A stretch of DNA of 64,000 bases, from NCBI GenBank assembly GCA_002269645.1, contig NIVC01000142.1:248001-312000 (forward strand), given 5' to 3'. The notes beneath the pieces were generated by a model that did not search any database, was not told the origin of the DNA, and saw only the letters and a list, made by a program, of their open reading frames with translations. Shown piece by piece: positions 15,001 through 62,107 of this stretch. How positions within the stretch are numbered: position 1 is the first letter of the stretch; every line of letters begins with the position of its first letter. This DNA comes from Macrostomum lignano (taxonomy: Eukaryota). A program made the translations under genes and the position numbers.

Positions 15001-16084
15001 CCCTCTGGGGAAACCCCTCTGGGGAAACCCCTCTGGGGAAACCCCTCTGGGGAAACCCCTCTGGGGAAACCCCTCTGGGGAAACCCCTCTGGGGAAACCC
15101 CTCTGGGGAAACCCCTCTGGGGAAACCCCTCTGGGGAAACCCCTCTGGGGAAACCCCTCTGGGGAAACCCCTCTGGGGAAACCCCTCTGGGGAAACCCCT
15201 CTGGGGAAACCCCTCTGGGGAAACCCCTCTGGGGAAACCCCTCTGGGGAAACCCCTCTGGGGAAACCCCTCTGGGGAAACCCCTCTGGGGAAACCCCTCT
15301 GGGGAAACCCCTCTGGGGAAATCCCTCTGGGTAAACCCCTCTGGGGAAACCCCTCTGGGGAAACCCCTCTGGGGAAACCCCTCTGGGGAAACCCCTCTGG
15401 GGAAACCCCTCTGGGGAAACCCCTCTGGGGAAACCCCTCTGGGGAAACCCCTCTGGGGAAACCCCTCTGGGGAAACCCCTCTGGGGAAACCCCTCTGGGG
15501 AAACCCCTCTGGGGAAACCCCTCTGGGGAAACCCCTCTGGGGAAACCCCTCTGGGGAAACCCCTCTGGGGAAACCCCTCTGGGGAAACCCCTCTGGGGAA
15601 ACCCCTCTGGGGAAACCCCTCTGGGGAAACCTTGAAAATGTAGCAGAAATGACTCACCGTAGACGAACAGGTAGATGGTGCACTGATCCTTGGCCTCGCC
15701 GGGATCCTCAACGCGAAACTTCACGTAACACCGGTAGACGCCCTGGTCGCTGACTCGCACATCCTTCAGCTTCAGGCTGGCCTCCGAATACACCGATAGG
15801 CGGCCAACAAACTCGGTGGCAAGCGTGGGCTCGAAGGACTCAAACCTGTCGAACACGGCCTGCTGCAAGCCGTCACGGCGCCACTGCACCTGGTGCGGCA
15901 CCAGCACGTTGGCGTTCGCCGGGTAGCGGAGCTGGCATTCGAACAACACGTCGCTACCAACGGCCACCTCCTTGGCAATCTGGCGCCGAGTCCGCGACAG
16001 CAGCGGCTGCATGGCGTGGCCCAGCCGACCGGCTTGTAGAAGCAGCAGCAGCGACAGCAGGAGCAGCAAGCCACCCGGAGCCAT
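1..16084 (-). CDS. tutl: Turtle/IGSF9-like immunoglobulin superfamily receptor (signal peptide, 5 Ig, FN3...), 3'-partial
   Basis: Exons 16084-15658 (signal peptide MAPGGLLLLLSLLLLLQAG + V-type Ig, D.G.Y.C), 3601-3296 (Ig2; not in the ORF track, translated by hand: RPKILTQLP...GLFECQASNKFG), 3030-2482 (Ig3+Ig4) and 463-1 (Ig5 ...DSGRYQCLVNN then FN3 ...LSWMPGYDGG...WYK). All junctions are GT-AG, phase 1 and in frame. The Ig5-FN3 order and the style of Ig1 match the Turtle/IGSF9 family. Confidence 0.85.
481..2489. repeat. 23-bp minisatellite (CTGCACCGTCACTGTGACTCACT), ~87 copies, filling tutl intron 3
   Basis: Directly visible; minor variants (GGTAC, TGAAC, CTCCC) recur. Confidence 0.98.
3140..3288. 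repeat. 24-bp tandem repeat (TTAGATTTTAGCGCCACATCATCC), ~5-6 copies, tutl intron 2
   Basis: Directly visible. Confidence 0.9.
3620..4262. repeat. Degenerate 10-11-bp repeat (GTACTGGG[A/G]AT)
   Basis: Directly visible; source of the spurious MYWECTG ORFs. Confidence 0.95.
4390..4526. repeat. Dispersed repeat, copy 1 (homologous to 61968-62107)
   Basis: Shared CTCACACAGGGTGTACAGC...CAGGCATGTACA.TGTCTGTGCCTT...GGTGTGAATCGCCC...CCAAATGAATGCG in the same orientation. Confidence 0.75.
4965..5630. repeat. ~30-bp minisatellite (GACAGAGTGACAGAATGAGGGACAGTCACT-like)
   Basis: Directly visible, degenerate. Confidence 0.92.
6708..7680. repeat. 30-bp minisatellite (GTACATTCTAAATGGAACAGCAGGTGGG[A/G]T), ~32 copies
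   Basis: Directly visible. Confidence 0.97.
8305..8540. repeat. 52-bp tandem repeat, ~4 copies
   Basis: TCGTGAGGTGGATGCAATGTACATTACCGGGGAAGAGAGTAAATCGATATTA repeated. Confidence 0.9.
9190..9945. repeat. 14-bp minisatellite (GGGAAATCCTGTCT), ~54 copies
   Basis: Directly visible; degenerate at the left end, homogeneous at the right. Confidence 0.97.
10365..10782. repeat. 21-bp minisatellite (GTCTCTTAGGTGGCCGCCCCT), ~19 copies
   Basis: Directly visible. Preceded at 10263 by CAGTGGCGTACGCAG, which resembles a MITE terminus, but no partner TIR was found. Confidence 0.93.
11525..13980. repeat. Compound array: 31-bp unit (GAGAATCACTCTTTAGAGAGTTGAAATCCAT, ~44 copies, to ~12900) grading into a degenerate 13-bp unit (TCTGGAGAATCAC)
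   Basis: Directly visible; both units share the core GAGAATCACTCT. Confidence 0.96.
14719..15631. repeat. 14-bp minisatellite (GGGGAAACCCCTCT), ~65 copies, starting ~27 nt inside tutl intron 1
   Basis: Directly visible. Confidence 0.98.
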
Positions 16085-22066: not shown

Positions 22067-25000
22067 TTATCGCGCAGGCCCAACATCGGCCAGCAGGCCG
22101 GGGTCGGCGACAAGCTCTTCAACGTCGCGATCGTCCAGACGAAGCGCAACGCGGGACATCCGGGCCTCGGCTGCCTTGGTGAGGCGCAGCACGCCGGTGT
22201 CGTGCAACGACTGGCAGTAGGACGGCAGCTCGTCCCACAGAGGCGGCGGCATCTGGCGAGCCGAGCAGAGCTCGCGCAGACTCGAGTCCAGCTCCGCCAG
22301 CGTTGCCTGCGGGCATTGCGAGAGTGAATTTAAACAAGGTCATCCCAGGTCAACAGGGAGGTCAGCAGGTTCACTGGCAAAAAAATTCGGCGGTCGCTAG
22401 AAAAAATAGGTCACTTCAGTTTCTAGGAAAACAGGTTGGTTTGAAATGTAGGAATTCTAGGAAACAGACACACATCCTTGAGCTGACATAAATTTCGCCG
22501 CAGAATATCATTTCTCACCTGTCGTTGACCCCGCCGACGAAGCCGCAGCGCCGCGGCAGCCGTCAGCCGTAGGTGCAACGGGAGTCGCCGTTGCGGCGTG
22601 TCCGGGGTGGCCAGACTGCTGGAGCCGCCGACCACGGCGGCCAGCGGCGATGCAGTCGCGGCTTTCAAAGCTTCGCCAACGTGTCGCACAGTCGGCGAAC
22701 CATCGGCCAGTTCAACGGATCGGCGGCAGACTTCCAGGAGGCGTCGGGCATCGCCGGTGCTGGCGGCGATTCGGCCAGCTGCCAGTCGGACAGCGTCGGC
22801 GGTTTCGGCAGCCAGCGCGGCCGGGGCCGCAGCGAATCGGGCGGTGACGATGGCGAGCAGGTCGGCTCGGGTATAGGGCGAGAAACTGAGCTGGCGAAGG
22901 CCGGCTGGCCGGGACACGGTGGCCGAGGCGGGGAACAGCCGGTCGCACAGGCTCAGCGAGTTGGCCACGCCCAGTACGCGAAGCCGGTTGCCGTCGCCAG
23001 CTCCGGCCAGACTGTCCGGCCAGCGAAAGATTCGCCGAAGATTGGCCAAGTCAATCTGGTCGATTTCGTCCAGCACCAAAGACAGCGACTGCTGCTGCTG
23101 CTGCTGCAGGAAGCGCCTGATGGCCGCCTCCGCCAGCTTCAAAGAGCCGGCGCCGCCATCTCCGCCGCTGTTAGCGGAGCTATTTTTAGCATCAACCAGC
23201 TGGGCCAGCTGAGCAGAGAATGACTTGGCGGATTCGCCAGTCTCCATGCAGTTGTGCAGAATACAGCGGACGGCTTTGACAGATTGCAGCTTGCGAACGG
23301 CGGTTTTAACGGCGGCAGTTTTGCCTGCGGTTTTTTAGCAGAGGAAATCATTGCCAGTGTTATGAAGTGCTTTATTAAACTACAGACCTGCTTGCTTATG
23401 ATAAGAAATAGCGAATCTAGAGTTTTACAATAGGATGTTCCTATAATAGGGATCTTCAATAAGGATGTACAGCTTCAATAAGGATGTACAGCTTTAATAA
23501 GGATGTATAGCTTCAGTAAGGATGTACAGCTTCAGTAAGGATGTACAGCTTCAATAAGGATGTATAGCTTCAGTAAGGATGTACAGCTTCAGTAAGGATG
23601 TACAGCTTCAGTAAGGATGTACAGCTTCAGTAAGGATGTACAGCTTCAGTAAGGATGTACAGCTTCAATAAGGATGTATAGCTTCAATAAGGATGTATAG
23701 CTTCAGTAAGGACGTACAGCTTCAGTAAGGATGTACAGCTTCAGTAAGGATGTACAGCTTCAGTAAGGACGTACAGCTTCAGTAAGGATGTACAGCTTCA
23801 GTAAGGATGTACAGCTTCAGTAAGGATGTACAGCTTCAATAAGGATGTACAGCTTCAGTAAGGATGTACAGCTTCAGTAAGGATGTACAGCTTCAGTAAG
23901 GATGTACAGCTTCAGTAAGGATGTACAGCTTCAGTAAGGATGTACAGCTTCAGTAAGGATGTACAGCTTCAGTAAGGATGTACAGCTTCAATAAGGATGT
24001 ACAGCTTCAGTAAGGATGTACAGCTTCAGTAAGGATGTACAGCTTCAATAAGGATGTACAGCTTTAATAAGGACTTCAAGAAGGCCATCTACACACCCAT
24101 GGCGTGTGAAGTATCAAGGATGTCTCACCTGAGCCCGGCGCCCCGCAGACGTACAGCACGCTATGGCTGGCCTTGCCCCTAAGAAAAGTCTCCAGAGTTT
24201 CCAGCTCAGCTTGTCGACCAACCAAACTGACATCGTCCCGCTCAGAGATGGCACTCTGCAGCAGCTGTTTGAGCTCAACAGACTGAGCGCTGGCCCTGAG
24301 CAGAGTAGACTTGCGCAGGTCGCACTCGGCCTCTTCTTCATCAAGCTGCGGATGCTGTTTTGCTTTTAACTTATTAGGAGTTGCTCTTGTTGCTGCTGCT
24401 GCCGCTGAAAGAGAGAGAGAGAGAGAGGGGGGCATGGCAGGTTTCGATGAGCGGTGGCTACAGACTTGTGAAACTCGAGTCTAAGAGTCTTGCCCTCCAA
24501 GCCAAGGAGCATATTGAATGCTCATTTTTTTAAATACGACTTGTCTGTTCTATGGCGGGCTTTGTGCTAAAGAAAGATTTCTCCTCCTGCCCTGAATATC
24601 TTCTCAAGGTACCAATTGCGGAGGAGACGCCAGCTATAGAGGGGGCGCCAGCTACAGAGAGAGCGCCAGCTACAGTGGGGGGCGCCGGCTATAGTTGGGG
24701 AGGGGGCGCCATCTACAGTGGTGGGGGTGCCAGCTATAGAGAGCGCCAGCTACAGTGGGGGGCGCCGGCTACAGTGGGGGGGGCGCCAGCTACAGTGGGG
24801 GGGCGCCGGCTACAGTGGGGGGGGCGCCAGCTACAGTGGGGGGCGCCGGCTACAGTGGGGGGGCGCCAGCTACAGTGGGGGGCGCCGGCTACAGTAAGGG
24901 GGGCGCCAGCTACAGTGGGGGCGCCGGCTACAGTGGGGGGCGCCAGCTACAGTAGGGGGGGGGGCGCCGGCTACAGTGGGGGGGGGGCGCCAGCTACAGA

Positions 25001-26277
25001 GAGAGCGCCAGCTACAGTGGGGGGCGCCAGCTACAGTGGGGGGGGGCGCCGGCTACAGTGGGGGGGGGCGCCAGCTACAGAGAGAGCGCCAGCTACAGTG
25101 GGGGCGCCAGCTACAGTGGGGGGCGCCAGCTACAGTGGGGGGGGGCGCCGGCTACAGTGGGGGGGGGCGCCAGCTACAGAGAGAGCGCCAGCTACAGTGG
25201 GGGCGCCAGCTACAGTGGAGCGCCAGCTACAGTGGAGCGCCGGCTACAGTGGGGGGGGCTCTAGCTACAGGGGGGGCTCTAGCTACAGGGGGGGGGCTCT
25301 AGCTACAGGGGGGGGGCGCCAGCTACAGAGAGGAGACGCCAGCTACAGAAAGGAGACGCCAGCTACAGAAAGGAGACGCCAGCTACAGAGAGGAGACGCC
25401 AGCTACAGAGAGGAGACGCCAGCTACAGAGAGGAGACGCCAGCTACAGAGAGGAGACGCCAGCTACAGAGAGGGGCGCCAGCTACAGAAAGGGGCGCCAG
25501 CTACAGAGGAGGCACCAGCTACAGAGAGGAGACGCCAGCTACAGAGAGGAGACGCCAGCTACAGAGAGGAGACGCCAGCTACAGAGAGGAGACGCCAGCT
25601 ACAGAGAGGGGCGCCAGCTACAGAAAGGGGCGCCAGCTACAGAAGGGCGCCAGCTACAGAGAGGAGACGCCAGCTACAGAGAGGAGACGCCAGCTACAGA
25701 GAGGAGACGCAGGAGACGCCAGCTACAGAGTGGAGACGCCAGCTACAGAGAGGAGACGCCAGCTACAGAGGGGCGCCAGCTACAGAGAGGAGACGCCAGC
25801 TACAGAGAGGAGACGCCAGCTACAGAGAGGAGACGCCAGCTACAGAGAGGAGACGCCAGCTACAGAGAGGAGACGCCAGCTACAGAGAGGAGACGCAGGA
25901 GACGCCAGCTACAGAGAGGAGATGCCAGCTACAGAGAGGAGACGCCAGCTACAGAGGGGGGGGGCATGCCTGCACATATACTCAGGGGGAAAAGCTGCTG
26001 CAGACAAGTCAACGCCCCTGCTCCCACTCCAAATAAGCTCACCTTCAACAGTCGCATTTTCCTTCTCCAGCTGCTCGTCATCAATTTCAGCTATTGACTT
26101 ATTCTTGCCCTTCATCGGCTTGCTCTTGGCCTTAGCAACCGACTGTCGCCGCCCAGTCCGCTGTTGCTTAGCCTTTGTCGGTGTCTCCAATAATTCCTCA
26201 GACTGGCCTGGGGCCACCTCCGACAGCGGCTGCTGCTGCTGCTGTTGAAGCACAGACCTTCTTCTGGTTGTTGGCAT
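22067..26277 (-). CDS. CDC6: Cell division control protein 6 (AAA+ ATPase with C-terminal winged helix), 4 exons, ~518 aa
   Basis: Exons 26277-26043, 24404-24129, 23324-22519 and 22306-22067 splice in frame (1557 nt). Motifs: LVGRQAELETLETFL, YVCGAPGSG|KT (Walker A split by an intron), HNCM, LVLDEIDQ (Walker B), LGVANSL, FSPYTRADL, TGDARRLLEVCRR. Confidence 0.9.
23455..24075. repeat. 19-bp minisatellite (AAGGATGTACAGCTTCAGT), ~32 copies, CDC6 intron 2
   Basis: Directly visible. Confidence 0.97.
24625..25965. repeat. Two-block G-rich minisatellite (core GCCAGCTACAG; G-run block, then GAGAGGAGAC block), CDC6 intron 1
   Basis: Directly visible. Confidence 0.94.
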
Positions 26278-26322
26278 AGCGATATTGGTGTCGGATTTAT
26301 TTTGATTTTAATCAACGTTTCG

Positions 26323-26340
26323 CTGAAATTAGAAATATTT
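26323..26340 (-). promoter_or_regulatory. Putative trans-splice (outron) acceptor for CDC6: tttctaatttcag, 45 nt before the ATG
   Basis: Strong polypyrimidine-AG in the short NGDN-CDC6 spacer, ~170 nt downstream of the NGDN AATAAA. Its function is inferred. Confidence 0.5.
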
Positions 26341-26494
26341 TTGAGAAATCTTAATAATCGTTACTAATGCTGTAAAATATTTAATTCGACTACTACTACT
26401 AGATAAAATAATAAATAAACAAAATAGACGCAAAATTTCACTTTTCCAACAATAAGCATACTACTAATAGTAGGAAAATGCGATTAGGCACACT

Positions 26495-26500
26495 TTTATT
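26495..26500 (-). terminator. Putative polyadenylation signal (AATAAA) of NGDN
   Basis: Lies ~36 nt after the NGDN stop and is followed by a U-rich tract on the sense strand. Confidence 0.55.
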
Positions 26501-26535
26501 AATTCTATAACAACGGGAGTTCACTTGTTTTATTT

Positions 26536-28554
26536 TCACTTTCTCTTCTTTTTGGCCCCTTTTTTAGCCAGTTTGCGGGCCAGTTTCCCGCGCGGACCCT
26601 TGGCCCGCCTGCCGCCGCGGTCCTCGTCCAGGCCGGCTGGCAGCAGGCCGCCCAGAGATTCGAAATCGCTGCCTAACCGTTTAGCCCGCAATTCCAGCTG
26701 CCTCTGCCGTTTGGTGACAGACAATCGAGTCAAATTCGCTTCCTCGTAGCGTCTGCGAGCTTCCGCTTCGCGCAGACGGCCGCTAGCGCCGGCGCCGCGC
26801 CGTTCCGACAATTCAACAGGCGCGTCGTCCATCTGCTGGCGTAGCTCCTCAAGCACATCCAGTTGAATAGCCCGACGCTTGGCTCGCCGATCGGCATCGG
26901 TGTTGGATGCGCGCCGATTCGAACCACTGGCCGCCGCCGCCGCTCCCTCGTCGTAGAACATCGGCGTAACCTTCGGCGGCACGTACTTGCCAGCACCGGC
27001 TGCTGAAGGCTTGGAGGCTTCGGCCAGCTTCTTTTTCTTCAGCTGATTCTGCTTGGCTCTCTTTGCCGCCTCATCGCTGTCGTCCCCGCTGTCTCCAGCA
27101 TCGTCTTCATCCGAGGACAGCCGGAAATTCTCCAGCCTGGCAGCCGTCGGCTCGGCCGCTTCATCAGCTCCGGCCAGCTGCGCCAGCCTGTCAATCTGGT
27201 GCCGGACGCGAGTCTCCACTGGCCGGGCGCACTCCAGCAGGCACCGCAGCTGGCACAGCCGTTCGACTGTCCGCTGCGGCGGAGGCTGGCCGGCCAGCCG
27301 GTCGGCTATGAGCTGCATCAGGTTGGCGGTGTACAGCTCCATAGCTTGGCATTTCAGCGCCACCAGGCTGACGGCCTCCGTGGTTGGCTGGCTGGACCAG
27401 TCTCGGCTGGACACTAAGTCGGACAGTTCGGCCAATGCGCCGGACACCTGATTGTAGAGCGGAGCTAGTTCTGCGTCCTGCAAAAAAGAAACACATGATG
27501 GGCTTTTATTAAGTACTTACATAAGTAGTACTAATATCCTGCACTGTATTCTAAATCCCTCAAATCCCACAGCCTAAACTAATCCCCAAAAATATCCCAC
27601 ACCCTAGACTAAATTCCTAAAAATATCCCACACCCTAGACTAAATCCCTAAAAATCTTACACTCTAGACTAAATCCCCAAAAATATCCCACACCCAAGAC
27701 TAAATCCCTAAAAAATCCCACACCCAAGACTAAATCCCTAGAAAATCCCACACCCTAGACTAAATCCTTAAAAAATCCCACACCCTAGACTAAATCCCTA
27801 GAAAATCCCACACCCTAGACTAAATCCCTAGAAAATCCCACACCCTAGACTAAATCCCTAAAAATATCCCACACCCTAGACTAAATCCCTAGAAAATCCC
27901 ACACCCTAGACTAAATCCCTAAAAATATCCCACACCCTAGACTAAATCCCTAGAAAATCCCACACCCTAGACTAAATCCCTAAAAATTTCCCACACCCTA
28001 GACTAAATCCCTAGAAAATCCCACACCCTAGACTAAATCCCTAAAAATTTCCCACACCCTAGACTAAATCCCTAAAAATTTCCCACACCCTAGACTAAAT
28101 CCCTAGAAAATCCCACACCCTAGACTAAATCCCTAAAAATTTCCCACACCCTAGACTAAATCCCTAAAAATTTCCCACACCCTAGACTAAATCCCTAAAA
28201 AATGTCACACCCTAGACTAAATCCCTAAAAATTTCCCACACCCTAGACTAAATCCCTAAAAATTTCCCACACCCTAGACTAAATCCCTAAAAAATGTCAC
28301 ACCCCAGACCAAATCCCAAAAATGCCACACCATAGACTAAATCCTCTAATTTTGTAACAAGACACGAGTGACAATCTCTGTCGCAGTCACAGTGCACTAA
28401 AAGCATGCACATGAGTAAGTGTAAGCGGCATTACAACTTGGACAATATTTATATATATAGAGAATATTTAATTTTATTCAAATTCTGTCCATATTTTTAA
28501 ACACAGAGCCACTACTTAGCATACAGGTGGGCTGGGCGGTACGGGATCTGCCAT
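26536..28554 (-). CDS. NGDN: Neuroguidin / Lcp5 (Sas10/Utp3/C1D family SSU processome factor), 2 exons, ~323 aa
   Basis: A 30-nt first coding exon 28554-28525 (MADPVPPSPP, donor GTATGC, phase 0) joins the acceptor tttttgcag and exon 27477-26536. Family-like segments: LKCQAMELYTANL, RLCQLRCLLECARPVETRVRHQIDRL, GKYVPPKV, RRRYEEANLTRL, and a basic C-terminus KKGAKKKRK. Confidence 0.85.
27545..28340. repeat. 29-31-bp minisatellite (CCCACACCCTAGACTAAATCCCTAAAAAT), ~26 copies, NGDN intron
   Basis: Directly visible. Confidence 0.95.
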
Positions 28555-28572
28555 AGAGGTGCAATAAAGTGC

Positions 28573-28590
28573 CTACAGTATAGTTACACA
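28573..28590 (-). promoter_or_regulatory. Putative trans-splice acceptor for NGDN (actatactgtag), 18 nt before the ATG
   Basis: AG acceptor-like site in the NDUFS2-NGDN spacer. Its function is inferred. Confidence 0.4.
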
Positions 28591-28790
28591 TCATACTCAT
28601 TAAAAGCTAATTATAGACAAAAACTGATAACTGGGAAGCTAAAGAATGGGAGGGCAGGAGGGGAGACGCAAAAATGACACACTAAGGCTACTACTGAGAG
28701 ACCCAAAGTAAGTAGTACTTATAAAAACAGAAACTAATAGAGATATATCTATGACAAAAATTCAATAAGAATCCGATCTGGTCTGACCCA

Positions 28791-28796
28791 TTTATT
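28791..28796 (-). terminator. Putative polyadenylation signal (AATAAA) of NDUFS2
   Basis: Lies ~175 nt after the NDUFS2 stop. Confidence 0.45.
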
Positions 28797-28969
28797 TTGC
28801 TTTACGAGTTCATATAAATTTAGACTATAAAAAACTTATGTGCTCTACTATGAGTAGCAAACTCAGCAATACACGCTATATTTATCCAGACCAGAGTAAT
28901 TCACACTGACAGCTTGAGTTTACCCAATTAATATAATTAGTTTATATCAACAATCTGTCAGTAAATCTT

Positions 28970-31900
28970 TCAACGGTCAACTTCGCCGAACACAACGTCC
29001 AGTGTGCCGATGATAGCCACAATATCGGCCAGCATGTGACCCTTGCCCAGCTTGTGCAGTCCGGCCAGGTGGGAGAACCCGGGCGCTTTGATTTTGCACC
29101 TGTACGGCTTGTTGCCACCGTCGGAGACCAGGTAGACACCGAATTCGCCTTTTGGCGCCTCGATTGCCGTATAGGTGGCGCCGGGTGGCACCTGTGGATT
29201 TGGGATAACGCGTCCAAATTTCAGTACTTGGATCAGAGTAGAGTGAGATCAGAATTGAGTGGGATCAACATTGAGTGGGAGCAGAGTGGAATGGGATCAG
29301 AATCGAGTGGGATCAGCATTGAGTGGAGTGGGATCAGAGTAGAATAGGATCAGAATCGAGTGGGATCAGCATTGAGTGGGATCAGAGTGGAATGGGATCA
29401 GAATAGAGTGGGATCAGCATTGAGTGGGAGCAGAGTGGAATGGGATCAGTATAGAGTGGGATCAGAGTAGAATGGGATCAGCATTGAGTGGGATCAGAGT
29501 AGAATGGGATCAGCATTGAGTGGGAGCAGAGTAGAATGGGATCAGAATAGAGTGGGATAGACCAGAGTAGAATGGGATCAGAATAGAGTGGGATAGACCA
29601 GAGTAGAATGGGATCAGAATAGAGTGGGATAGACCAGAGTAGAATGGGATCAGTATAGAGTGGGATCAAAGTAGAATGGGATCAGCATTGAGTGGGATCA
29701 GAGTAGAATGGGATCAGCATTGAGTGGGATCAAAGTAGAATGGGATCAGCATTGAGTGGGATCAGAGTAGAATGGGATCAGCATTGAGTGGGATCAGAGT
29801 AGAATGGGATCAGCATTGAGTGGGATCAAAGTAGAATGGGATCAGCATTGAGTGGGAGCAGAGTGGAATGGGATCAGTATAGAGTGGGACCAGAGTAGAA
29901 TGGGATCAGTATAGAGTGGGATCAGAGTAGAATGGGATCAGCATTGAGTGGGATCAGAGTAGAATGGGATCAGCATTGAGTGGGAGCAGAGTAGAATGGG
30001 ATCAGAATAGAGTGGGATAGATCAGAGTAGAATGGGATCAGTATAGAGTGGGAGCAGAGTAGAATGGGATCAGAATAGAGTGGGACCAGAGTAGAATGGG
30101 ATCAGTATAGAGTGGGATCAAAGTAGAATGGGATCAGTATAGAGTGGGATCAGAGTAGAATGGGATCAGCATTGAGTGGGATCAGAGTAGAATGGGATCA
30201 GCATTGAGTGGGATCAGAGTAGAATGGGATCAGCATTGAGTGGGATCAAAGTAGAATGGGATCAGCATTGAGTGGGATCAGAGTAGAATGGGATCAGCAT
30301 TGAGTGGGATCAGAGTAGAATGGGATCAGCATTGAGTGGGATCAGAGTAGAATGGGATCAGTATAGAGTGGGATCAGAGTAGAATGGGACCAGAACCCAT
30401 TAGTTGCTCACACAATTTAATCAGTCTTACCTGATAGCCCTCGGTAAAGAGTTTAAAATGGTGAATAAGCGCCTCCATGGACTCCTTCATCTCGGCACGC
30501 CTAGGCGGCACAATTTTTCGATCGTCGACTTTCACCTCGCCAGGCGGCAGCTTGTTGAGGCACTGTTCGATGATTTTCTGGGACTGGCGCATCTCTTCCA
30601 TGCGGCACAGGTAGCGGTCGTAGCAGTCACCGTTGCGACCAATGGGAACGTCGAATTCAACCTGCGGCAGTGGGCAACGGACGAATTAGATAAAAAATAG
30701 ATTAGAAGGTAGACTATTAAAATCGCGTAGTGTCAGACTACATGGACTCTAACGGTGTCACACTAGTGCTGTCAGACTCTAGTGTAGTTAAATTAGTGGG
30801 TGTCAGACTAGTAGTGTCAGACTCTAGTGTTGTCAGATTAGTGGTGTCAGACTCTAGTGTAGTTAAATTAGTGGGTGTCAGACTAGTAGTGTCAGACTCT
30901 AGTGGTGTCAGACTCTAGTGGTGTCAGACTAGTGGTTTCAGACACGAGAGTTGTGAAATCAGTGTCAGACTCTAGCGGTGTCAGACTCTAGTGGTGTCAG
31001 ACTCTAGTGATGTCAGACTCTACGAGTGGTGTCAGACTCTAGTGGTGTCAGACTCTAGCGGTGTCAGACTCTAGTGATGTCAGACTCTACGAGTGGTGTC
31101 AGACTCTAGTGATGTCAGACTCTACGAGTGGTGTCAGACTCTAGTGGTGTCAGACTCTAGTGGTGTCAGACTCTAGCGGTGTCAGACTCTAGTGATGTCA
31201 GACTCTACGAGTGGTGTCAGACTCTAGTGGTGTCAGACTCTAGTGGTGTCAGACTCTAGTGATGTCAGACTCTACGAGTGGTGTCAGACTCTAGTGATGT
31301 CAGACTCTAGTAGTTTTAGACACTAGTGGTGTCAGACTCTAGTGGTGTCAAACCGGTGTCAGACTCTAGTGATGTCAGACTCTAGTAGTTTTAGACACTA
31401 GTGGTGTCAGACTCTAGTGGTGTCAAACCGGTGTCAGACTCTAGTGGTGTCAGACTCTAGTGGTTTTAGACACTAGTGGTGTCAGACTCTAGTGGTGTCA
31501 AACCGGTGTCAGACTCTAGTGGTGTCAGACTCTAGTGGTTTTAGACACTAGTGGTGTCAGACTCTAGTGGTGTCAAACCGGTGTCAGACTCTAGTGGTGT
31601 CAGACTCTAGTGGTGTCAGACTCTAGTGGTGTCAGACTCTAGTGGTGTCAGACTCTAGTGGTTTTAGACACTAGTGGTGTCAGACTCTAGTGGTGTCAAA
31701 CCGGTGTCAGACTCTAGTGGTGTCAGACTCTAGTGGTGTCAGACTCTAGTGGTGTCAGACTCTACGAGTGGTGTCAGACTCTAGTAGTTTCAGACACTAG
31801 TGGTGTCAAACCGGTGTCAGACTCTAGTGGTGTCAGACTTGAGTGGTGTCAGTTAAACTAATGAAGGTAAATAGAAGGGGATCAAAGTCTGGAGGTTGTG

Positions 31901-32963
31901 ACAGGTTCAAAAATCGATCGGGGTCAGCTGAGTCCATGGGGTGGGGAATCCAGTGGACTCAAAGTCAAAACGTGTACAGGATTGGACCCGCCAAGCAGCC
32001 AATTCATGCGCTCACCTGATCGTAGGCATCGTATGGCTGGGATTTGCGCAAGTCCCAGCAGATGCCGGAGCCGCGAAGCATCACCCCAGAGAAGCCATAG
32101 TTGAGCGCATCCTCCGCGCTGATCACACCGATATCCTTGGTTCGCATCACCCAGATGCGATTCTCAGTCAGCAGATCATCCACCTCGTCGATTCGCTGTA
32201 CAAACTTCTTATTCCAATCGTAGATATCCTCGAGCAGGCCGACTGGCAGGTCCCGGTCCACGCCGCCGGGCCTGACGTAGGCGGCGTGCATTCTGGCGCC
32301 GCTGACTCGCTCGTAGAACTCCATCATCTTTTCGCGCTCCTCGAACATCCAGAAGAATGGCGTCATGGCGCCAACGTCGAGCGCGTGAGTGCCGATGCCC
32401 ATGAGGTGGTTCATGATTCTGGTCAGCTCGCCGAACAGCACCCGGATCCACTTGGCCCGGGGCGGCACATCAATATTGAGCAGTCGCTCAACAGCCAACG
32501 AGAAGCACTGCTCGTTGCACATCATTGACACATAGTCTAATCTATCGAAATAAGGCAGCGCCTGAGTGTAAGTCTTGTACTCGATCAGCTTCTCAGTGGC
32601 CCGGTGCAGCAGGCCGATGTGCGGATCGGCTCGCACGACAGTCTCACCGTCCAGGGTGAGCACCAGCCTGAGCACACCATGAGCAGCCGGGTGCTGCGGA
32701 CCAAAATTTATCGTCATATTTAGCACCTGCTTGTCCCGATCCTCCATAGCGCCAGTCTGCGGCAGGAACGGCTCCCATTTGCTGGCCCATTTCTGGTCAG
32801 GATGAGTGGCTAGCATGACTTGCTTGTCGATGGTTCGCCTGTCGGCAACGTACTGCTCAGCATAGCCGCGCCGGCACTGCTGGTGAGCTGGCAGCGGCTG
32901 GCGCAGCAGAGCCAGCTGGGTGAGCCTGCTGCTGGCCTGGCGTAGCAGGGCGGTGGCCGACAT
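28970..32963 (-). CDS. NDUFS2: NADH dehydrogenase [ubiquinone] Fe-S protein 2 (complex I 49 kDa subunit), mitochondrial precursor, 3 exons, ~466 aa
   Basis: Exons 32963-32016, 30661-30431 and 29191-28970 (all phase 0, 1401 nt). Arg/Leu/Ser-rich transit peptide. Hallmark motifs [76 protein letters not shown]. Confidence 0.97.
29245..30390. repeat. 16/32-bp minisatellite (GATCAGAGTAGAATGG/GATCAGCATTGAGTGG), NDUFS2 intron 2
   Basis: Directly visible; dimeric higher-order unit. Confidence 0.95.
30730..31850. repeat. 16-bp minisatellite (GTGTCAGACTCTAGTG) with a ~74-bp higher-order unit, NDUFS2 intron 1
   Basis: Directly visible. Confidence 0.95.
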
Positions 32964-33382: not shown

Positions 33383-35044
33383 TATATATTTAAAAATATA
33401 AATAAATTTTTAAGTATTTTAATTTTATTCATTGGGATGATAACTAGCATTAGATACAATATTCAAAAAAGTAATGCCAATACCTGAAAGTCTGGTACTT
33501 TATTGCATTACTTGGTTTTTAAAAAAAGCAAGGTTTTAAGGCAAAGAAAGCAAGCTTAGCATTGTTTTAAATGAAGAAACTTTGGTAAAACAAATAAAAT
33601 AAAATTACCAAATGAAAAACAAACAATTGCCACTTTATTCAATCAATTAACTACTTTAGGCAGTCTTATTTATATATATTAGTACTATTGTCATTTGAGT
33701 ATAGTGTTGCAGCCTGCTAATCTGCAATTGCTGCACCTGCATGCTTAATCCTTTAGTTTGATAAGGGGTTGGGTGCACTTAGTCATCTAAGCAGACTGAC
33801 TGCTCTAAGCAAAGCTAGACTTAAAAGCCTCACCCTTGATTAGGCAATATCTGGCCCTACTGCTCTCTATATGTAAACCTAAGTAAATTGTATCACTTTT
33901 CTTCATTTTACTCAACTTGGCCTTGCTCTAAGCACCCAAAATAGTGGATTTATTTATTTATTTCTGATTGTTTACTTGTTTACTAAATTACTTGTGCTAC
34001 TACTAGTGAATTACTAGCATATTTACTATTATAAAAATTATAGAAATCAATTGGCAATCAACATATAATCAATTGATAGTAAATCTATTGCAGAACTTGC
34101 AGCATAATAATTGATAAATAAATAATATCATTTTAATGATGATTAATAACTACCAACTAATTATAAAGCATATATAGCCAAGGACATTCCTTTAAAATTA
34201 TAAAAACTTTTCAAGAAAGAAAACGTTTGTTACTTTTTTACTAGATACTGTATAACCTAATTATTTTACCTTTATTAACCTAAATATAAAGTATTTATTA
34301 TTCTTCTTTAAAAGTATTTTAAAAACTATTTCATTTATTTTAAAGAAATTTTTATGTATTATCTAATTTTCAAAATTTAAATAGCATTGGATAATTGGGA
34401 AAATTGAAAAATTATTTATAGCCTATAGCCTAGTTATAGGCTTAGAAGTCCAATACTGATAAAATTATTGGCTTCCAATACTCCAATATCCAAAAGGTAT
34501 TGCCAATAATATTAGAATATCACATAATCAGAAGTGTGCCTAACACTGATGATAATAAATTTTATTAGGCACATCTTTTATAATTGGCTTATTAGCATAC
34601 CTAGCATGCCTTCTTGGCATATAGAGATTGCTAAGATAATTAGATATGAGTGAGTTCAGAGTCCAAATCAATATATACAATTAGTATACAAAAATGATTA
34701 ACTTTAAGTTTGGCATAGTCTCTATGTACATAGTTAAAATAGCTAAATTTTGATTAAAAAGAATAGCTCTTAGCTCTTACCAGAAAAATGGAAAACTAAA
34801 TTTAAAAAATCATGTTTCATTTTTTAAGAAGTTAAAGTAAGACAAATTTAGTTTAAATAAACTAGTTCTTTAGGGTTCAGTAAAAACTGAAGTTTTTCTA
34901 ATTTTTTTTTCAATTTTTTATTCATCATTCAAATTTCATTTTAAGAATCATATTGTAAGCTGTAAATATTAGTTTTTATTATTATTTTCTGTTTTGACAT
35001 TTTATATGTGATAAAAATCCATTGGTCTTGGTCTTGGTATATAG

Positions 35045-38000
35045 TGTAGTAGGGGGGTTTAGTTCAAGCAGTTTTGCTAAGGGCGTTTGCCAAGGTTTCC
35101 GATTTGTTGAGATAATTATTTTTAGTTTTCCGAAATCGAGAATAAGCAGTTTTGCTTTTACGCTACTGTTAGTAGTTCACCCTCGGGGAAATATCTGAAG
35201 TTGTGGGAATTCGAGTATTAGCGGGTTCCTCTATTAGTAAAAGGCTGTTTAGCCTCGAGAAAAGCATCCGTTCGGGACAATCAGTCTAAAGCATCCCCGT
35301 TCAGGGCCGTCCATTAGGACAATATTTCAGAGAAAGTCTCAAAGCACAAACTCAAATATAAGGGAGTCTCCCCTTGTATGAAAGATAGAAATACTAAAAA
35401 TTCTGGAACCATAAAGGAAATTAAGGGTAAGTCAGGGTAAAATAGGGAGGCTAAGAAGGAGTCTACCGAGAATAGGAATATTAGTATAGTCAGTTAGATA
35501 AATAGGGAAAGACTAAGGGAGTCTACCATTAGTCTAATTAAAAATCGGAGTCTACCGAATTGTTTACATAGGGAACTATAGTGTGAAATTTACTCTTTGC
35601 ATATTTGGTGTTAATTAATACCTTCTTTGTGTGTTCTAATAACCTTACATAACATTGACTCTTGTCTCACTTATTTTAATTTAACATTAACTATAAGGGA
35701 CATTAGTCTGGTGGCAGCAACCTACCAAATTAAAAGTACATGATAATAGAAATAGCAGTAAAACCCAAAACCAGTAGCCTAAACCGCAGGTACCACGCTT
35801 GTCCAATAGTGATATAAATAAACTAAGGAAGCAATTTTTGGTTGTAGCATATACATGTACCAGTAATCCTAACCTAACCCTGGCAGATAATATATATATA
35901 TAACTCCATATATAAGTTATATATACAAGTACCAGAAAAATTTTGGCAGATTTTTTGGCAGCAGATATATATATACCAGAAAATTATAGCATACAAAGAG
36001 ACCTAGAATATACCATTGGCATACAACTTAATGGATATAAGACTATTTGTCTACCCTGGGCAAATGGCCAATGGACTATGTCTACTGGTGCTAAATTGTG
36101 GATGTGATAATTGACATAGGTTTCTAGACACTTTGGTGACAAGACACTTTGGCAACAGATGTTTCAGCAACAAGTCATATTAGCAACATACAGTAGAGTT
36201 CCTAATTTTGATATAGGTGTTTTATTGTGTCACTAAAATACATTGCAAAAAATTGCCATAAAATGTGCATTATTACATAATCCAGACTAAGGCAGTAGTC
36301 TTATCTACTTTTTCTCTGCAGTAAAACCATGCTGCAATAAAAAATAGAAGCCATTGTATTATATATAATCCACACAAATGAAAGTACCTTGCCATCAAAA
36401 ATCTCTATAAACTAAATCTCTAAGGTTTGTATACTTGTGACTTTTTCTTAAGTCAATCTGATTCTAAGAAAGTATATAAGGTATATAGAAATATAAAATA
36501 TATACTTTTAACAAAGCCAACTTTTTTTGTTTTTAAAAATTCTAGAATATAATGTGGTAGCGGTATCTTTGTTTCTTATAAACTTGTTTTTCAAATTAGC
36601 GTGAAATTTTATATTCATTGTTTTAATACTCAAAATATGTTCAACTTGTAAGAATTTGTTTAAAATACATGCAATCAACTAGTATAAAAGGAAGATAATT
36701 GTAGGAAGGAAAAGATAACTCGTTTGCTAGCTATAAGCTCAAAATGTGTTTGATAAATCTTTCTCAGATTATTGCTTAATTTCTAAAGAGTATTGCAGAG
36801 AAGTTTGGAAGTCGGGAATTTAGAATTCATGTAAAAGTAGTACTAATAGTAATCGCTGTGACCCTCTAATCTAGGTAATACCCAGACTAGAGAGAGAAAG
36901 TACATATACCAGTAAGACCACTCAGGCCATATACTAAGAATGCTACTAGACCATATACTAAGAATGCTACCAGACTATATACTAAGAATGCTACCAGAAT
37001 ACTACAAGAATGCTACCCAGAAATATATGAGATTCTAAGAAACAGTTAGAAACATTAAGGCAAAAATTTAGTATCAGCAGTAGAAATTTAATAAAGGGAA
37101 ATTAAAACCCTGTAACAACTTGGTGGCTTAGCAGTGGGATTCCATATTGTACAGGAACACCCCTACAACAACTTTGGTGGCAATTAGTAGGATAATTGGA
37201 GGACAGAAGTAAGCCCTAGCACAATAATTGTTTCAAAAACATAAATGATTTTTTTATAGAATTTTCTTGCTTATTAGTGCAGCACCTTTAGGAAATTTTT
37301 AAACATTTCAATTTGGACTAATTATCTGCAAGCAGACAAATAGCTGGTAGACAAATAGTCTGGTACTCTAACTTAATATATGGAAGATCCTAGAGTGCCT
37401 TCTTGGACATGTATACCAAGATTTCCTAGTATACAATTAGGGTATTTGCCATTTTTCAGCATATATCTAAGCATATATAACATAGTGGCAAATTTTTTGC
37501 TTTTATCTATGGCATACTCACATGCATGTTAGGTTAAAGTAAGGTTATTTTATATAAAATACACTATATGCAATACTATTGTGGTAGGGCAATCTACCAC
37601 ATTGAATTAGTGAAATTGCAACCCATTGTGCAACTTTGTCATGACCCCTTTTTGCGTCACCCAGTATGCCACCCCTGGCCCTATCTATCCCTTGCCCCAT
37701 TTTTTGCCAAAGTAAAATTTTTTGTTTTTTTTCCATTTGTTATTAGTGTCATCTGTTGCCCTATCATTTGCCCCATCCTCTGCCCCACCCCCTGCCTTGC
37801 AGCCCCATCTGTTGCCCTATCCCTGTCTAGACGACACAATTTTTCCATTTATAAGGCAAATTCAGGCCACCAATTTGTCATGCCTTTCTATCTATAGTGT
37901 TTTAGTTGTTTGGTTTGTTTCTTTGTTTGTTTGTTTGTTTGTTTATCCTGCTTGCTTGTTCTTCTTCTTAGTGTGTTTAATAGTTTGCCTTTCATTAAAT

Positions 38001-38265
38001 TAGTTTAGTGTCTTTGCCTTTTATTAGTTAATTGTCTGGTACCTGGCACCAGCCACAATCATTCTTGTAAATAATAATAAAATATTTGTTTAATATTGCC
38101 TGCTTAATAAATAATAACTAATAAGTTCAATAATTAATCAAAGCCATTAACAGTTTATCTTGAGTCATTTGCTTGTGGGGCGTTAAACAACCGAATTAAT
38201 CTCAACTTGGAATGAGCTCTGAGATCTCAACATTTTGTAATACAAAATTTACAGTGGTGGCAGCG
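35045..38265 (+). mobile_element. Decayed LTR-retrotransposon relics (LTR-like termini and tRNA-Leu-type PBS motifs)
   Basis: TGTAGTAGGGG at 35045 versus CCCCTACAACA ending at 37170. ...ACA ends are followed by TGGTGGC motifs at 37121 (TGGTGGCttAGCAGTGGGATTC), 37175 and 38255 (TGGTGGCAGCG). No intact gag/pol; boundaries are uncertain. Confidence 0.35.
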
Positions 38266-38324
38266 CTACTCTACTGAAAGTACTCAGTTCAGCAACTTAG
38301 AAAACAGATTTATAGTGTCTAGAC

Positions 38325-38718
38325 CAGGGGTCTTCAACCTTCTACGGGCAGCAGGCCACATTGACAACTGGCTTAGGATGTGCGGGCCATATGCTAATAT
38401 AAAATATGCAAAGCCAAGCAAAAATGTCCATTTCTAAATGTCAAACAAAATTAATGAGATGGCTGGTGCTCCTTATCCTTCGACAGCAGTTCAAGTTTGG
38501 CTTGATCAATGAAACTGCAAGCAGCAGTGCATCTTTGAGGTGGCCATCAGTCAACTGCGCTCTAGTTTTCCTCTTGGTCAGCTTCGGGGGCTGCAGTGAA
38601 ATCCAGTGATAGACTTGGCAGGCCGCATATAATGCAAACTACTAGAAGGTACTGTGGGCCACAAAAAAAGGGCTTGCGGGCCACATGCAGCCTGCGGGCT
38701 GCAGGTTAGGGACCCCTG
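38325..38718. mobile_element. hAT (Charlie/MER5-like) MITE, 394 bp
   Basis: TIRs CAGGGGTCTTCAAC / GTTAGGGACCCCTG. 8-bp TSD GTCTAGAC / ATCTAGAC (7/8 match), fitting the nTCTAGAn hAT target preference. Confidence 0.85.
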
Positions 38719-41700
38719 ATCTAGACCATTGAGTCTAAAGTCTAAACGACTATGCCTGCATAAGACCACTCGACTACAATTACGACTACCCCCAGATTTG
38801 AGAACCCGGCTACTGGAGTAAAACAAGAAGAGATAACTTGTTATGATTTGTCTGCAGTGATTTCTGGATTTATTTATGAGAAGGCAATGCCAATCGGTTT
38901 TGAAGAAGAAACCCCAAAGAGAAAACCAAATTTCCAAAGTGACCAAAAAAATATTAAACTTCCTCCACCCCACCTTACTATCAATATGGAATATAATAAG
39001 CAATAAAAAAATAATTTAAAACTTTATGCCTGAAAAAACATTGTTACTCAACGTGTCTTTAGTTTTAGCAAATAAAAAGTAGAGGGCCTATTTAAAGTCT
39101 TTCTTTTATACTTGCCTTTCCTCAGTACATATTGCAAAAATGTATAATTTTTTAAGTTTGTTATTCTGCATGAAAAATGAATTCAAAAATGAAAAAAATT
39201 GTATATAACTATTGCTTGGGTCGTTCGCAAATTCTAGGAGGAGCAAAAATTTTAACAATTTTCCGAACATTTACTATTGTTACTGCCATATTGAAAATAA
39301 TAGGACACTTTTATCTGTGAATAAAGATAATTTTTGGGTTAAACTTTATCATGCAAAAGTGTTTTTTAATCATCTGGCGGTATTAAGCGATAATTAGCGA
39401 TGAAAGAATTCAAATTCAATCATTTCACCGATGTTAATTTTTGGTACTACAAGATGTCTGTAGCTAAAAAAAAGTTGTTGTTGTGTTGAAACCTTGCTAT
39501 ATTACATTTAAAATTAAAGCTTATATAAATTTAATTTAAGATTTTTTTAAAGCTCAATAAACTGCACTATAAATGATTTTATAGATGCTTAACTGTACGC
39601 CTAGCATTTCCGGTGGGATAGCCTCTTTGCGTCTCACAAAATGTATTTTTTCAGCTGACGTCTAGAATGTGCGCTTAAAATGATACATTTTGATGCAGAT
39701 AATTAGAAAAACATGTCTTTTTATCTTTTTGTAAAAAATTGTTATGAAATAGAGCACTATTGTTGATAAAAATAATTAAAAGCAACCATGCATCGCAATA
39801 AACTCCTACTTTGAAGCACAAAATAAATATCCTGTAACCACACTAGCATTCTCCATGGAGCACCTTTTGAGCTGAAATTTTACACAGATATCCAGTAAAG
39901 TAAACTGAGCAAATGATTTTTTTTGTTTTTGAAAATACTTCAATTTGGCTATGTATCAGTTAGTACATTGGACATATTTATTATATTTTTATTAAAATCC
40001 TTGTAACCAAGCTACAGAGAAACATGTGCAAAACTGGACCTTGAAATTTGACCTGAATGATCAGCAAATGTGTATCTCGAAATGATTTTTTTTGTTTTCA
40101 TCAAGTCATTCTATGCTAATTTTTTCTGAAGGTAAAGATACCATATATTTAGAGTCAATAGGGGAAGCATTTAGACTTATTCAATAGTCATTAAAATTGC
40201 AACTATATTATTATAATATAGTAATAATATTATACATGTATTATATAGTAATATTAACTTCTAAGATGCCCTTATAAATTTAAGTAAAGACAACAGGCCT
40301 TAATTAATTAATCAGCATTTTGAAGAAACTGACCTTATACAGATGGGCCCCAAGCTAAGAAATGAATGTAGAGCTTATTTCGTGTAAGGTATAAAAATCA
40401 ATTTATTAAAATATTAAATACTTCTAATAAATTGGTTAAATTAGTTATTTACCTTGAATTAATTTAATTTTAATAATTAAATATATAAATTTGTTTCACT
40501 TCTTACTGCATTTAAATAGAGTACCTCTCTACTATACTATAGAAGTATAGTAAAAGTACATGGTAAAAAAGTATAGTAAAAAATTTTCTTTGGTTTAATC
40601 CCAGCTTGCCTCAGTTTTTTAGTCTTAATACGAGCTAGATAGTAAGTGTTGATTAATTTGCTCCATCACCTTTTGCCACGGAAACAGCACATGTCGGACA
40701 TGCAACACTCTTCCTGATCCCTGGATTCAAGATGACTGCTTCTGCTTCTTCAATGCTTGAAAACTGAGCTCATGGAGCTTTAGGTTATGCTGTCAGAGTG
40801 CTGCTGCCGGTGCTGTGTGTGTATGTGTGTGTCTTCTGCGGGTAGGTTCCATGTCCCTCAGTTTAGCCACTGTTGTGGGCTAACTGGAGGAATTGCCGTT
40901 GTCGGTGCTGCAGGTGGCACTGCATGATAGTATTGACGCTGTCAGTGACGCTGGCAAAGGCTTGGACGAAGCTAGGTGCCGTCATTGTCAGAAGGACATG
41001 CGTGTGCTGCTTAGACCAGTGCGCACATTCGACTGGACTCGTATCTGGTGCAGTCTGGTGTATTCACTGAGATTGTGTGGATCTGCCTCCTCGCATCACC
41101 TCAACCAGGCTCAATTTCTTTTGTAGAATTTTCGTGCGCTGCTTAACTGCATCTTGTGCCTGCTGAGTGATGCCAAGAATTGTGCCACACAATAATTTGG
41201 CCCATAAACTACTCGTATATTATACATATGTATGCACAGCACACACACACGCAGTTCATTCACATTAAACGTACTAGTTAATGGAATTCTCATCTCATGA
41301 GCTCTAGTCTATGGACAAACCTGAAATTACTAGAATATCTAGACAGATCTAAACTTCTTTGAGCAGCGCGCTGCGCTGCGAGCAAATACATGTAGATTCC
41401 TTAGCGCAACTAATTAATAGTGTAGTACAGTCTACAGCCTGAAGTAGCCTGTGTAAGATGCGGAGGGATGATTTTTGCATAGGAAGCCACTACGGTAAGG
41501 TTGATGGAACTATGGGGAGGTGAGAGATTCAAAGCGAGGGACGGAAGCCATGCATAGTTCGATCATAAGTTTGATTATTCCATGAGTCTGGGGATGCATT
41601 AACGAGAGGCGGATGAGAGCATAGAAATAAAGCGGGCTAAATATATTAATACACAAAATTACATGTACTAGCTAGTAATTTCAGAATGGTCAGCGACTCC

Positions 41701-44700: not shown

Positions 44701-45024
44701 AAGCTGCAGATCGAGTCAGCCATGGCAGATGGCCTATAAAGCATTCGAACGTTTGCAATGTTAACACATTGCTGCTGTGCAAAGAACCGTGAGAAAAAAC
44801 CACTGTAAATATGCTTGGATACTGCTTGGAGGAATGTATGAAATATGAAAAATAAAATAAAATATAGAGTCATGCTTCTGTATTATATATCTGATCTGAT
44901 TGAATTATTACTAAATTAAAGGCCATTAAAGTCAACAAAATAAAGATCAAACAATACAAACGATAATATGCAAATACACCGTGAATAAATAAACTACGTA
45001 GATAATAATAGATAATTGCATTCT

Positions 45025-45235
45025 GCAGGGCGTAGCCGGGAGGGGGGTGCATGGTGTTTCCAATTAGACCGGCAAAAACTTTTCGCTTCTGTTCCCTGTT
45101 AGCAGTTCTTCAACAACTACATTGGCATCCTTTGGTGCGATGGCGACCCTAATTCCAAGGTCACATTTCAAGCTCTCTCGCTGTCCATCCCGCGCTGGTA
45201 CCCCTAGTTAAACGATCCTCCAGCTACGCCCGTGC
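45025..45235. mobile_element. Short MITE-like element (~210 bp)
   Basis: Imperfect TIRs GCAGGGCGTAGCCGGGAGG / CCTCCAGCTACGCCCGTGC; no clear TSD. Confidence 0.55.
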
Positions 45236-45893
45236 TACAAGTACAGTACGTGCCGATTAAAATTAGTTTCCATGCACAAAAAATATATGGTCGGCAGCAG
45301 GCAACAAGTGAAAGACGTGCCAATAAAATTTCGAAGCTTAAAATTTTCTAATAATAATTCAATAAGCCGTGATAGAATCATACTGTACAAATAAAAAAAT
45401 ATCGATATTAATACATGTATAGCATGTATTAGGGATGAATAAGTTATTTTAAATGTCAAGCAATAAATCTATATATATATATATACGGCACAACAAAAAT
45501 TTATTAAAAATTGCCAAATGAATTTCCAAATATAGATAAAAGAAGATAAACTAAGTAAATTTTAAGGATTAATATGTTGGAAATCTGCTATATTGTTGAC
45601 TCGCATCAGTCACTTATGCTTGGGTTCCAATGTGGGGTCACTCTGAAACTATAGACACCGCATGAGACAGTCGATCAGGGCGTGCCTGTGCGAGTGCGTT
45701 CCTGCCTGTGTACGTGACGTGTGTGCTCAAGGATCAGCGAAAGAGACATCTGCTTGTCGCCTTGATAGTGCCCGAAGCCTACATGTGACTTAACAAGATA
45801 GTACTAATTACCGTTTACATATATTGCTTGCTGTATGAATCATTTTCCTTTTAGAAAATAATTAAACATTAAATTATAAGCCAAATATTAGAT

Positions 45894-54572: not shown

Positions 54573-54627
<55 letters not shown>

Positions 54628-54630
54628 CTA

Positions 54631-54687
<57 letters not shown>

Positions 54688-61967: not shown

Positions 61968-62107
61968 AGGCAGACACTCGTACACACGCTCACACAGGGT
62001 GTACAGCGGCCCTGACCTTCGAATCGGCAGGCATGTACATTGTCTGTGCCTTGGAGGTTGGCCCTCGTAGGTGTGAATCGCCCGCCTCCCCGCCCCAAAT
62101 GAATGCG
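61968..62107. repeat. Dispersed repeat, copy 2 (homologous to 4390-4526)
   Basis: See copy 1. Confidence 0.75.

Follow-up and report, generated by a model that had tools for sequence, protein, structure and literature searches.

NDUFS2, NGDN and CDC6 of Macrostomum lignano as a probable operon resolved by a spliced leader

Three genes of the flatworm Macrostomum lignano, NDUFS2, NGDN and CDC6, lie head to tail on one strand, which raises the question of whether they are transcribed as one unit and separated into individual mRNAs by spliced-leader trans-splicing. The locus lies in a 64-kb stretch of DNA (the window), an exact piece of contig NIVC01000142.1 (positions 248001-312000) of the M. 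lignano assembly Mlig_3_7 (GCA_002269645.1). A 24-kb contig stretch matched the window as an exact substring, and the record position is the window position plus 248000. M. lignano uses a single 35-nt spliced leader (CGGTCTCTTACTGCGAAGACTCAATTTATTGCATG), trans-splices about 30% of its genes and places about 15% of them in operons, and thousands of polycistronic transcriptional units have been annotated (PMC5730564; PMC8629364). The reported motifs are [T/C]TNCAG for the trans-splice acceptor and GT[G/A]AG for the donor (PMC5730564; PMC8629364), and operons have a modal repeat-adjusted spacing of about 100 bp under an operon threshold of 1 kb (PMC8629364). An initial annotation of the window had started from the premise that flatworms resolve polycistronic RNA with a spliced leader, and the single leader and the thousands of units of M. 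lignano bear this premise out.

We propose, with a probability of about 70%, that NDUFS2, NGDN and CDC6 form an operon resolved by the spliced leader. Within this operon, the pairing of NGDN with CDC6 is more secure, and the inclusion of NDUFS2 is less secure. The identities, order and spacing of the genes, the published flag of NGDN (TRANSSPLICED) and the transcriptional-unit name common to the trio are established, and a single promoter upstream of all three genes is inferred.

Gene order, spacing and the common unit name

The three genes were identified by Pfam, GenBank and solved-structure matches, and for NDUFS2, neuroguidin and CDC6 alike the named family was matched better than the nearest paralogous family. 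Pfam Complex1_49kDa (PF00346) was found in all three exons of NDUFS2, the first of which is 100% identical to M. lignano PAA89658, and NDUFS2 is 66-83% identical to animal NDUFS2. For NGDN, human neuroguidin (7mq8, E=9.8e-26) was the best solved-structure match and yeast Lcp5 (1.2e-08) the next, and the sole distant database match was a cnidarian neuroguidin-like protein. The four-exon model of CDC6 yields exactly the 527 aa of the GenBank product, with the Walker A motif GAPGSGKT restored. Human CDC6 (E=1.2e-30) came ahead of ORC1 (2.6e-23) among the solved structures, and Pfam recognised the Cdc6 lid, with AAA and WHD_Cdc6 domains in precomputed hits and no Pfam match over the N-terminal region. 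The homology search with CDC6 returned a paralogous copy only.

Both the GenBank annotation and the sequence place the trio in head-to-tail order on the minus strand, adjacent on one strand as in M. lignano operons. GenBank lists only these three genes over 24 kb, in this order, and no opposite-strand gene was found between them, the plus-strand open reading frames being translations of repeats or antisense to exons. The gene identities and the co-orientation are thus as the initial annotation had them. Two paralogous copies, L006 (NIVC01001326.1) and L007 (NIVC01002029.1), were compared with the window. The three copies are colinear, with about 2.2% of unique positions differing between them. 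Positions 11210-15028 of L007 hold the CDC6 exons at 97-99% identity, and the gene has no annotation there.

Since the NGDN mRNA begins at 27478/27477 (see below), the NDUFS2-NGDN spacer is 1,492 bp (28969-27478) and not about 415 bp as initially given. More than half of it is a 799-bp minisatellite, which the initial annotation took for an intron. The number of repeat units differs between the copies, being about 26 in the window against about 5 in L007 in the three-copy alignment, while the unique parts of the spacer are about 99% identical among the copies. The repeat-adjusted distances are then 693 bp (1,492 - 799) and 213 bp, both below 1 kb, and they are shorter still when counted from the poly(A) sites. 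The spacers had also been described as free of minisatellites, which is true of the NGDN-CDC6 spacer and false of the NDUFS2-NGDN spacer. Other details of that description were found in the sequence: the stops at 28970 and 26536, the AATAAA signals at 28796-28791 and 26500-26495, the AG dinucleotides at 28574-28573 and 26324-26323, U-rich spacers (41-44% T on the sense strand) and minisatellites in the long introns. The exons have 50-68% GC, against 25-36% in the spacers and unique intron sequence. A further AATAAA, at 27505-27510 (minus strand), precedes the NGDN acceptor by 27 nt and may be an alternative distal 3'-end signal of NDUFS2. By arithmetic from the NGDN lengths in the listed rows of a published table (1044 and 1043 nt), the NGDN mRNA ends near 26434-26436. 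From this 3' end (~26435) to the CDC6 acceptor is about 111 nt, in agreement with the modal spacing of M. lignano operons.

The names of the genes carry further information, because in the published pipeline transcriptional units assembled from RNA-seq were clustered and given a prefix, and were then cut into genes at leader and poly(A) sites. On NIVC01001326, NDUFS2 is Mlig012976g1, NGDN is g2 and CDC6 is g3, and three unrelated genes under one Mlig012976 prefix require a unit that spans them. In the window NDUFS2 is Mlig012976g5, and g4, which is listed together with g2 as NGDN, is almost certainly the window copy of NGDN. An older gene model also joined the trio: UniProt A0A1I8JC95 (older assembly, 1033 aa; window 32963-22519, minus strand) fuses NDUFS2, NGDN and part of CDC6, by way of a cryptic donor within the final exon of NDUFS2 and of the NGDN acceptor at 27478. 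Thus, the operon reading of the trio is already reflected in the public annotation and is not new; it would be an ordinary M. lignano operon. The initial proposal of an operon is largely supported by the NGDN flag, the common prefix and the repeat-adjusted spacers below 1 kb; its 5' end of NGDN was misplaced, as no mini-exon precedes the gene.

Table 1. Features of the NDUFS2-NGDN-CDC6 locus (window coordinates; a slash marks a splice junction)
Feature	Position	Strand	Remarks
NDUFS2 (complex I 49-kDa subunit)	28970..32963	-	PAA89658, BOX15_Mlig012976g5, 466 aa
NDUFS2 coding exons	32963-32016, 30661-30431, 29191-28970	-	spliced translation equals PAA89658 exactly
AATAAA, likely NDUFS2 poly(A) signal	28791..28796	-	~175 nt past stop; use inferred from sequence
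NDUFS2-NGDN spacer (NGDN outron)	27478..28969	-	1,492 bp, 693 bp unique
Minisatellite in NDUFS2-NGDN spacer	27551..28349	-	799 bp, 30-31-nt unit, ~26 copies; Tandem Repeats Finder
NGDN trans-splice acceptor TTTCTTTTTTGCAG	27478..27491	-	exon from 27477; short form TTTTGCAG/GAC
NGDN (neuroguidin/Lcp5 orthologue)	26536..27477	-	single exon, 313 codons + stop; Mlig012976.g2/g4
Two AATAAA after NGDN stop	26534-26529, 26500-26495	-	motif scan
NGDN-CDC6 spacer	26323..26535	-	213 bp stop to acceptor, 25% GC, 41% T, no tandem repeat
CDC6 trans-splice acceptor AATTTCAG	26323..26330	-	exon from 26322; motif scan
CDC6	22067..26322	-	PAA89656, BOX15_Mlig019581g1; 518 aa from ATG at 26277
CDC6 exons	26322-26043, 24404-24129, 23324-22519, 22306-22067	-	splice model

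Leader acceptors and the start codon of NGDN

A motif scan of the NDUFS2-NGDN spacer found a single [T/C]TNCAG match, the acceptor at 27478/27477. The listed rows of the published table give NGDN as Mlig012976.g2/g4 with the flag TRANSSPLICED, and in all three copies the GenBank coding sequence (CDS) of NGDN is single-exon and 5'-partial, starting 3 nt past the acceptor at 27478. Together with a leader footprint in L007, described below, these observations identify NGDN as a spliced-leader trans-spliced downstream gene.

The junction of leader and exon reads ...TGC ATG/GAC GCA, so that the ATG of the leader is in frame and opens the product M-DAELAPLYNQ.... The NGDN frame is closed upstream by a TAA at 27519-27517, and no genomic ATG occurs from there to 27477. 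The same arrangement is seen in a contig from a related species (67% protein identity), which has cag/GACGCC at the acceptor, an in-frame TAA eleven codons upstream and no ATG, and whose nucleotide similarity to the window begins 7 nt before the NGDN exon. The first internal Met of the leader-initiated protein is residue 47, and the 46 residues ahead of it are conserved between the two species and lie within the match to human neuroguidin. De novo NGDN transcripts of 1087 and 1085 nt are called complete with a 5' untranslated region (UTR) in the listed part of their source, and 1085-1087 nt is the length expected of a 35-nt leader, 1044 nt and a short tail together, which fits a leader joined to a single exon. 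An exact look-up of M+DAELAP... found it on no record, and the run-assembly contigs recovered came only from related species. With the leader AUG in frame and no genomic start codon, it is likely from the sequence that the initiator AUG of NGDN comes from the terminal AUG of the spliced leader.

Initiation at the AUG of a flatworm leader is known (Cheng et al. 2006, J Biol Chem 281:733, as cited in PMC12582326; slORFfinder, PMC9851317). As in the genes of that class, the leader at NGDN ends in an AUG that is in frame, and the gene's own first ATG comes only at residue 47. The work of Cheng et al. was, as cited, done in schistosomes, whereas the NGDN case in M. lignano is read from the sequence. 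NGDN clearly exemplifies genes without a start codon of their own, and gene finders that see the genome only will give such a gene a wrong start, as the initial annotation did, or fuse it with its neighbours, as in UniProt A0A1I8JC95.

At CDC6, the [T/C]TNCAG motif ends at 26323/26322, and a second match lies upstream at 26369. Trans-splicing of CDC6 is suggested by the motif at 26322 and by a CAG-to-ATG footprint in L006, with the annotated 5' ends lying 18-30 nt downstream; no published trans-splicing flag for CDC6 is found among the table rows listed. The acceptor 26323/26322, which had been proposed at the outset, thus gains a motif match and a spliced-leader footprint in a paralogous copy, and the exact leader junction of CDC6 is likely to be there. 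For NDUFS2, the mRNA of a related species bears the same leader as M. lignano, and by this analogy NDUFS2 is probably trans-spliced in M. lignano too.

The footprints appeared when the acceptors of the three copies were aligned. At NGDN (window 27491-27478), the window and L006 read TTTTTTGCAG/GAC, whereas L007 (~9985-9997) reads TTTTTGCATG/GAC; its acceptor, TTGCATG/GAC, equals the last 7 nt of the leader. At CDC6 (window 26330-26323), the window and L007 read AATTTCAG/CGAAAC, whereas L006 (~11145-11152) reads AATTTATG/CGAAAC. This exchange, giving TTTATG/CGAAAC, is the sole CAG-to-ATG exchange in 9,216 aligned unique positions, which hold 22 adjacent double mismatches. Mlig_3_7 was polished with Pilon using RNA-seq and DNA reads, and RNA-seq was mapped end-to-end for the transcriptome assembly. 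If, as we assume by carrying this setting over, the reads were also mapped end-to-end during polishing, those carrying the last leader bases would have been forced onto the acceptor. The ATG in place of CAG at the two acceptors is thus probably an artefact of RNA-seq polishing that records leader junctions at 27477 and 26322. If so, some trans-splice sites in Mlig_3_7 carry false ATGs and have lost their acceptors, of which users of the assembly should be aware, and such leader-derived ATGs could be exploited to find trans-splice sites without reads. It is highly improbable that the ATGs in L007 NGDN and L006 CDC6 are real DNA, produced when leader-spliced mRNA was copied back by RNA-templated conversion. 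Were this true, one NGDN copy would have acquired a start codon in the genome and become independent of trans-splicing, which would be a visible route out of dependence on the operon and the leader after genome duplication.

We propose the following path for the operon. RNA polymerase II would start upstream of NDUFS2 and read through all three genes, and the NDUFS2 mRNA would be cleaved and polyadenylated past the AATAAA at 28796. The 35-nt leader would be trans-spliced to TTTTGCAG/GAC at 27478/27477, supplying the cap as well as the AUG start codon of NGDN. The NGDN mRNA would terminate near 26435, and about 111 nt further on the leader would be joined at TTTCAG/CGAAAC (26323/26322) to give the CDC6 mRNA, which has its own ATG at 26277.

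One transcription unit or several

Several observations weigh against the operon. In two of the three copies the trio is divided between unit prefixes (CDC6 is Mlig019581g1 in the window, and NGDN is Mlig017877g1 in L007), and the M. lignano authors describe unit splits at repeats as common. The first spacer is long, at 1.3-1.5 kb, with room for an internal promoter. NGDN is a 'Neoblast, stringent' gene in the published table rows listed, its mRNA falling several-fold after irradiation, whereas NDUFS2 and CDC6 are not among the rows listed in the tables of the 2016 and 2018 papers. About 60% of the trans-spliced genes of M. lignano are outside operons. Finally, the GenBank CDSs of CDC6 are 5'-partial, beginning 18 nt past the acceptor in the window and 30 nt past it in L006 (26292-26322). 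These CDS starts fall just past an in-frame TAA, with no AG between acceptor and ATG, and simple cutting at the trans-splice site would not explain them. The offset may come from imprecise peak calling, from internal priming where the 5' UTR is A-rich, or from a genuine start site.

Expression throughout the body would be expected of a complex I subunit. An unlikely arrangement, though the best placed of the alternatives, is that NDUFS2 is a separate unit, with NGDN and CDC6 forming a two-gene operon that is driven by an internal promoter within the 1.5-kb spacer, mainly in proliferating cells. The lengths of the two spacers (1,492 bp against 213 bp), the 'Neoblast, stringent' listing of NGDN, which differs from the ubiquitous expression expected of NDUFS2, and the different unit prefixes of NDUFS2 and NGDN in L007 would all agree with it. 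Yet one prefix covers all three genes on NIVC01001326, and g4 (NGDN) and g5 (NDUFS2) share it too; the repeat-adjusted first distance is within the published operon limit, and unequal mRNA levels within operons may also arise after transcription. The initial annotation had gone further and described a growth operon. This restates a published generalisation on trans-spliced and neoblast genes, and among the table rows listed NGDN alone of the three is documented as neoblast-enriched.

More improbable still is that the three are separate genes with their own promoters, whose monocistronic transcripts are each trans-spliced and whose closeness has no transcriptional meaning. That most trans-spliced M. 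lignano genes are outside operons, that the annotated 5' ends of CDC6 lie inside its 5' UTR and not at the acceptor, and that the prefixes are split in two copies speak for such independence; but only about 111 nt of 25%-GC sequence separates the NGDN 3' end from the CDC6 acceptor, the RNA-seq assembly united the three genes in at least one copy, and the older gene model fused all three as well. An operon of the three genes remains our preferred reading.

Hardly credible is the initial model of NGDN, in which a 10-codon exon (28525..28554, minus strand; ATG at 28554 plus nine codons, 67% GC) receives the leader at 28573/28572 and is cis-spliced to 27477: these positions do hold the ATG, 30 nt of GC-rich sequence, a GT and, upstream, an AG, and a rare isoform is conceivable, but the exon is unsupported in the main mRNA, as all three GenBank CDSs are 5'-partial and start downstream at the 27478 acceptor, the proposed acceptor CTGTAG and donor CCT/GTATGC mismatch [T/C]TNCAG and GT[G/A]AG (the only acceptor match in the spacer being at 27477), the L007 footprint is a leader-to-GAC junction, and the mRNA lengths in the listed table rows equal the leader plus one exon. 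Conservation among the window, L006 and L007 says nothing about this mini-exon, since about 99% identity extends over the whole unique spacer.

Known operons and the surrounding sequence

The closest known systems are the M. lignano operons described by Wudarski et al. 2017 (PMC5730564) and Ustyantsev & Berezikov 2021 (PMC8629364), with which the trio shares the organism, the leader and the acceptor motif. Like these operons, it consists of co-oriented, conserved housekeeping genes with a repeat-adjusted spacing below 1 kb, the second pair being about 100 nt apart. There is no difference in kind: the first spacer is inflated by a repeat, the locus is already unit cluster Mlig012976, and in two of the three assembly copies the trio falls into more than one published unit. 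A full-text literature search for Mlig012976, Mlig019581 and Mlig017877 returned no paper, so that the trio is undescribed in searchable paper text, and the supplements of Wudarski 2017 gave no match to the gene names of the locus. Since such operons are documented by thousands in M. lignano and this one is already in the gene names, the finding matters little beyond the locus.

The SL2-type operons of Caenorhabditis elegans work similarly. There too, 3'-end formation and then trans-splicing some 100 nt further downstream resolve a polycistronic precursor, the spacers are U-rich, and the genes include housekeeping and growth-related ones. Unlike C. elegans, M. lignano is reported to have a single leader and no specialised SL2 for downstream genes; the trio also differs in its 1.5-kb minisatellite-bearing spacer and in a leader that ends in AUG and supplies a start codon. 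By the literature the locus is thus not a member of the SL2 type.

Neither flank extends the unit. Downstream, an Ig-superfamily gene (start 16084, minus strand) is about 6 kb away, or about 3 kb without tandem repeats, and upstream about 13 kb of AT-rich sequence separates the trio from a NACHT/WD40 gene; both genes fall outside the 1-kb limit and thus outside the operon. Rfam at gathering thresholds gave no matches over the whole window, which indicates no spliced-leader RNA gene or other known RNA in it. The 35-nt leader was absent from the window by fuzzy search, and k-mers from its 3' end occurred at chance level.

An element that resembles a tRNA-derived short interspersed element lies directly upstream of NDUFS2, at 33380-33090 (minus strand), and was found in all three paralogous copies. 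Its head, about 72 nt long, is tRNA-like, with a GGTTCGATTCC box B and a loop resembling a CAT anticodon, and its tail measures about 220 nt. ARAGORN called no tRNA, this element included, which indicates that the tRNA-like part is degenerate.

Each long intron of the trio, and the NGDN outron, is taken up almost entirely by one private minisatellite (23454-24073, 24621-25956, 27551-28349, 29230-30393 and 30745-31852). Their units are 16-32 nt, they fill 53-94% of the interval, and their copy number varies strongly between the paralogous copies. In the Ig-superfamily gene, the open reading frame of the first exon continues into a 14-nt minisatellite.

All recognisable genes of the 64-kb window are on the minus strand (45894-56692, 59182-63942 and 2468-16084, plus the trio). 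Besides the trio they are two fibrinogen-C-domain genes, a NACHT/AAA and WD40 gene, and the Ig-superfamily gene, which has a signal peptide. Between the NACHT/WD40 gene and NDUFS2, positions 34000-46000 form a 12-kb stretch of 34% GC with no tandem repeats and almost no long open reading frames, in contrast to its repeat-filled, gene-dense flanks.

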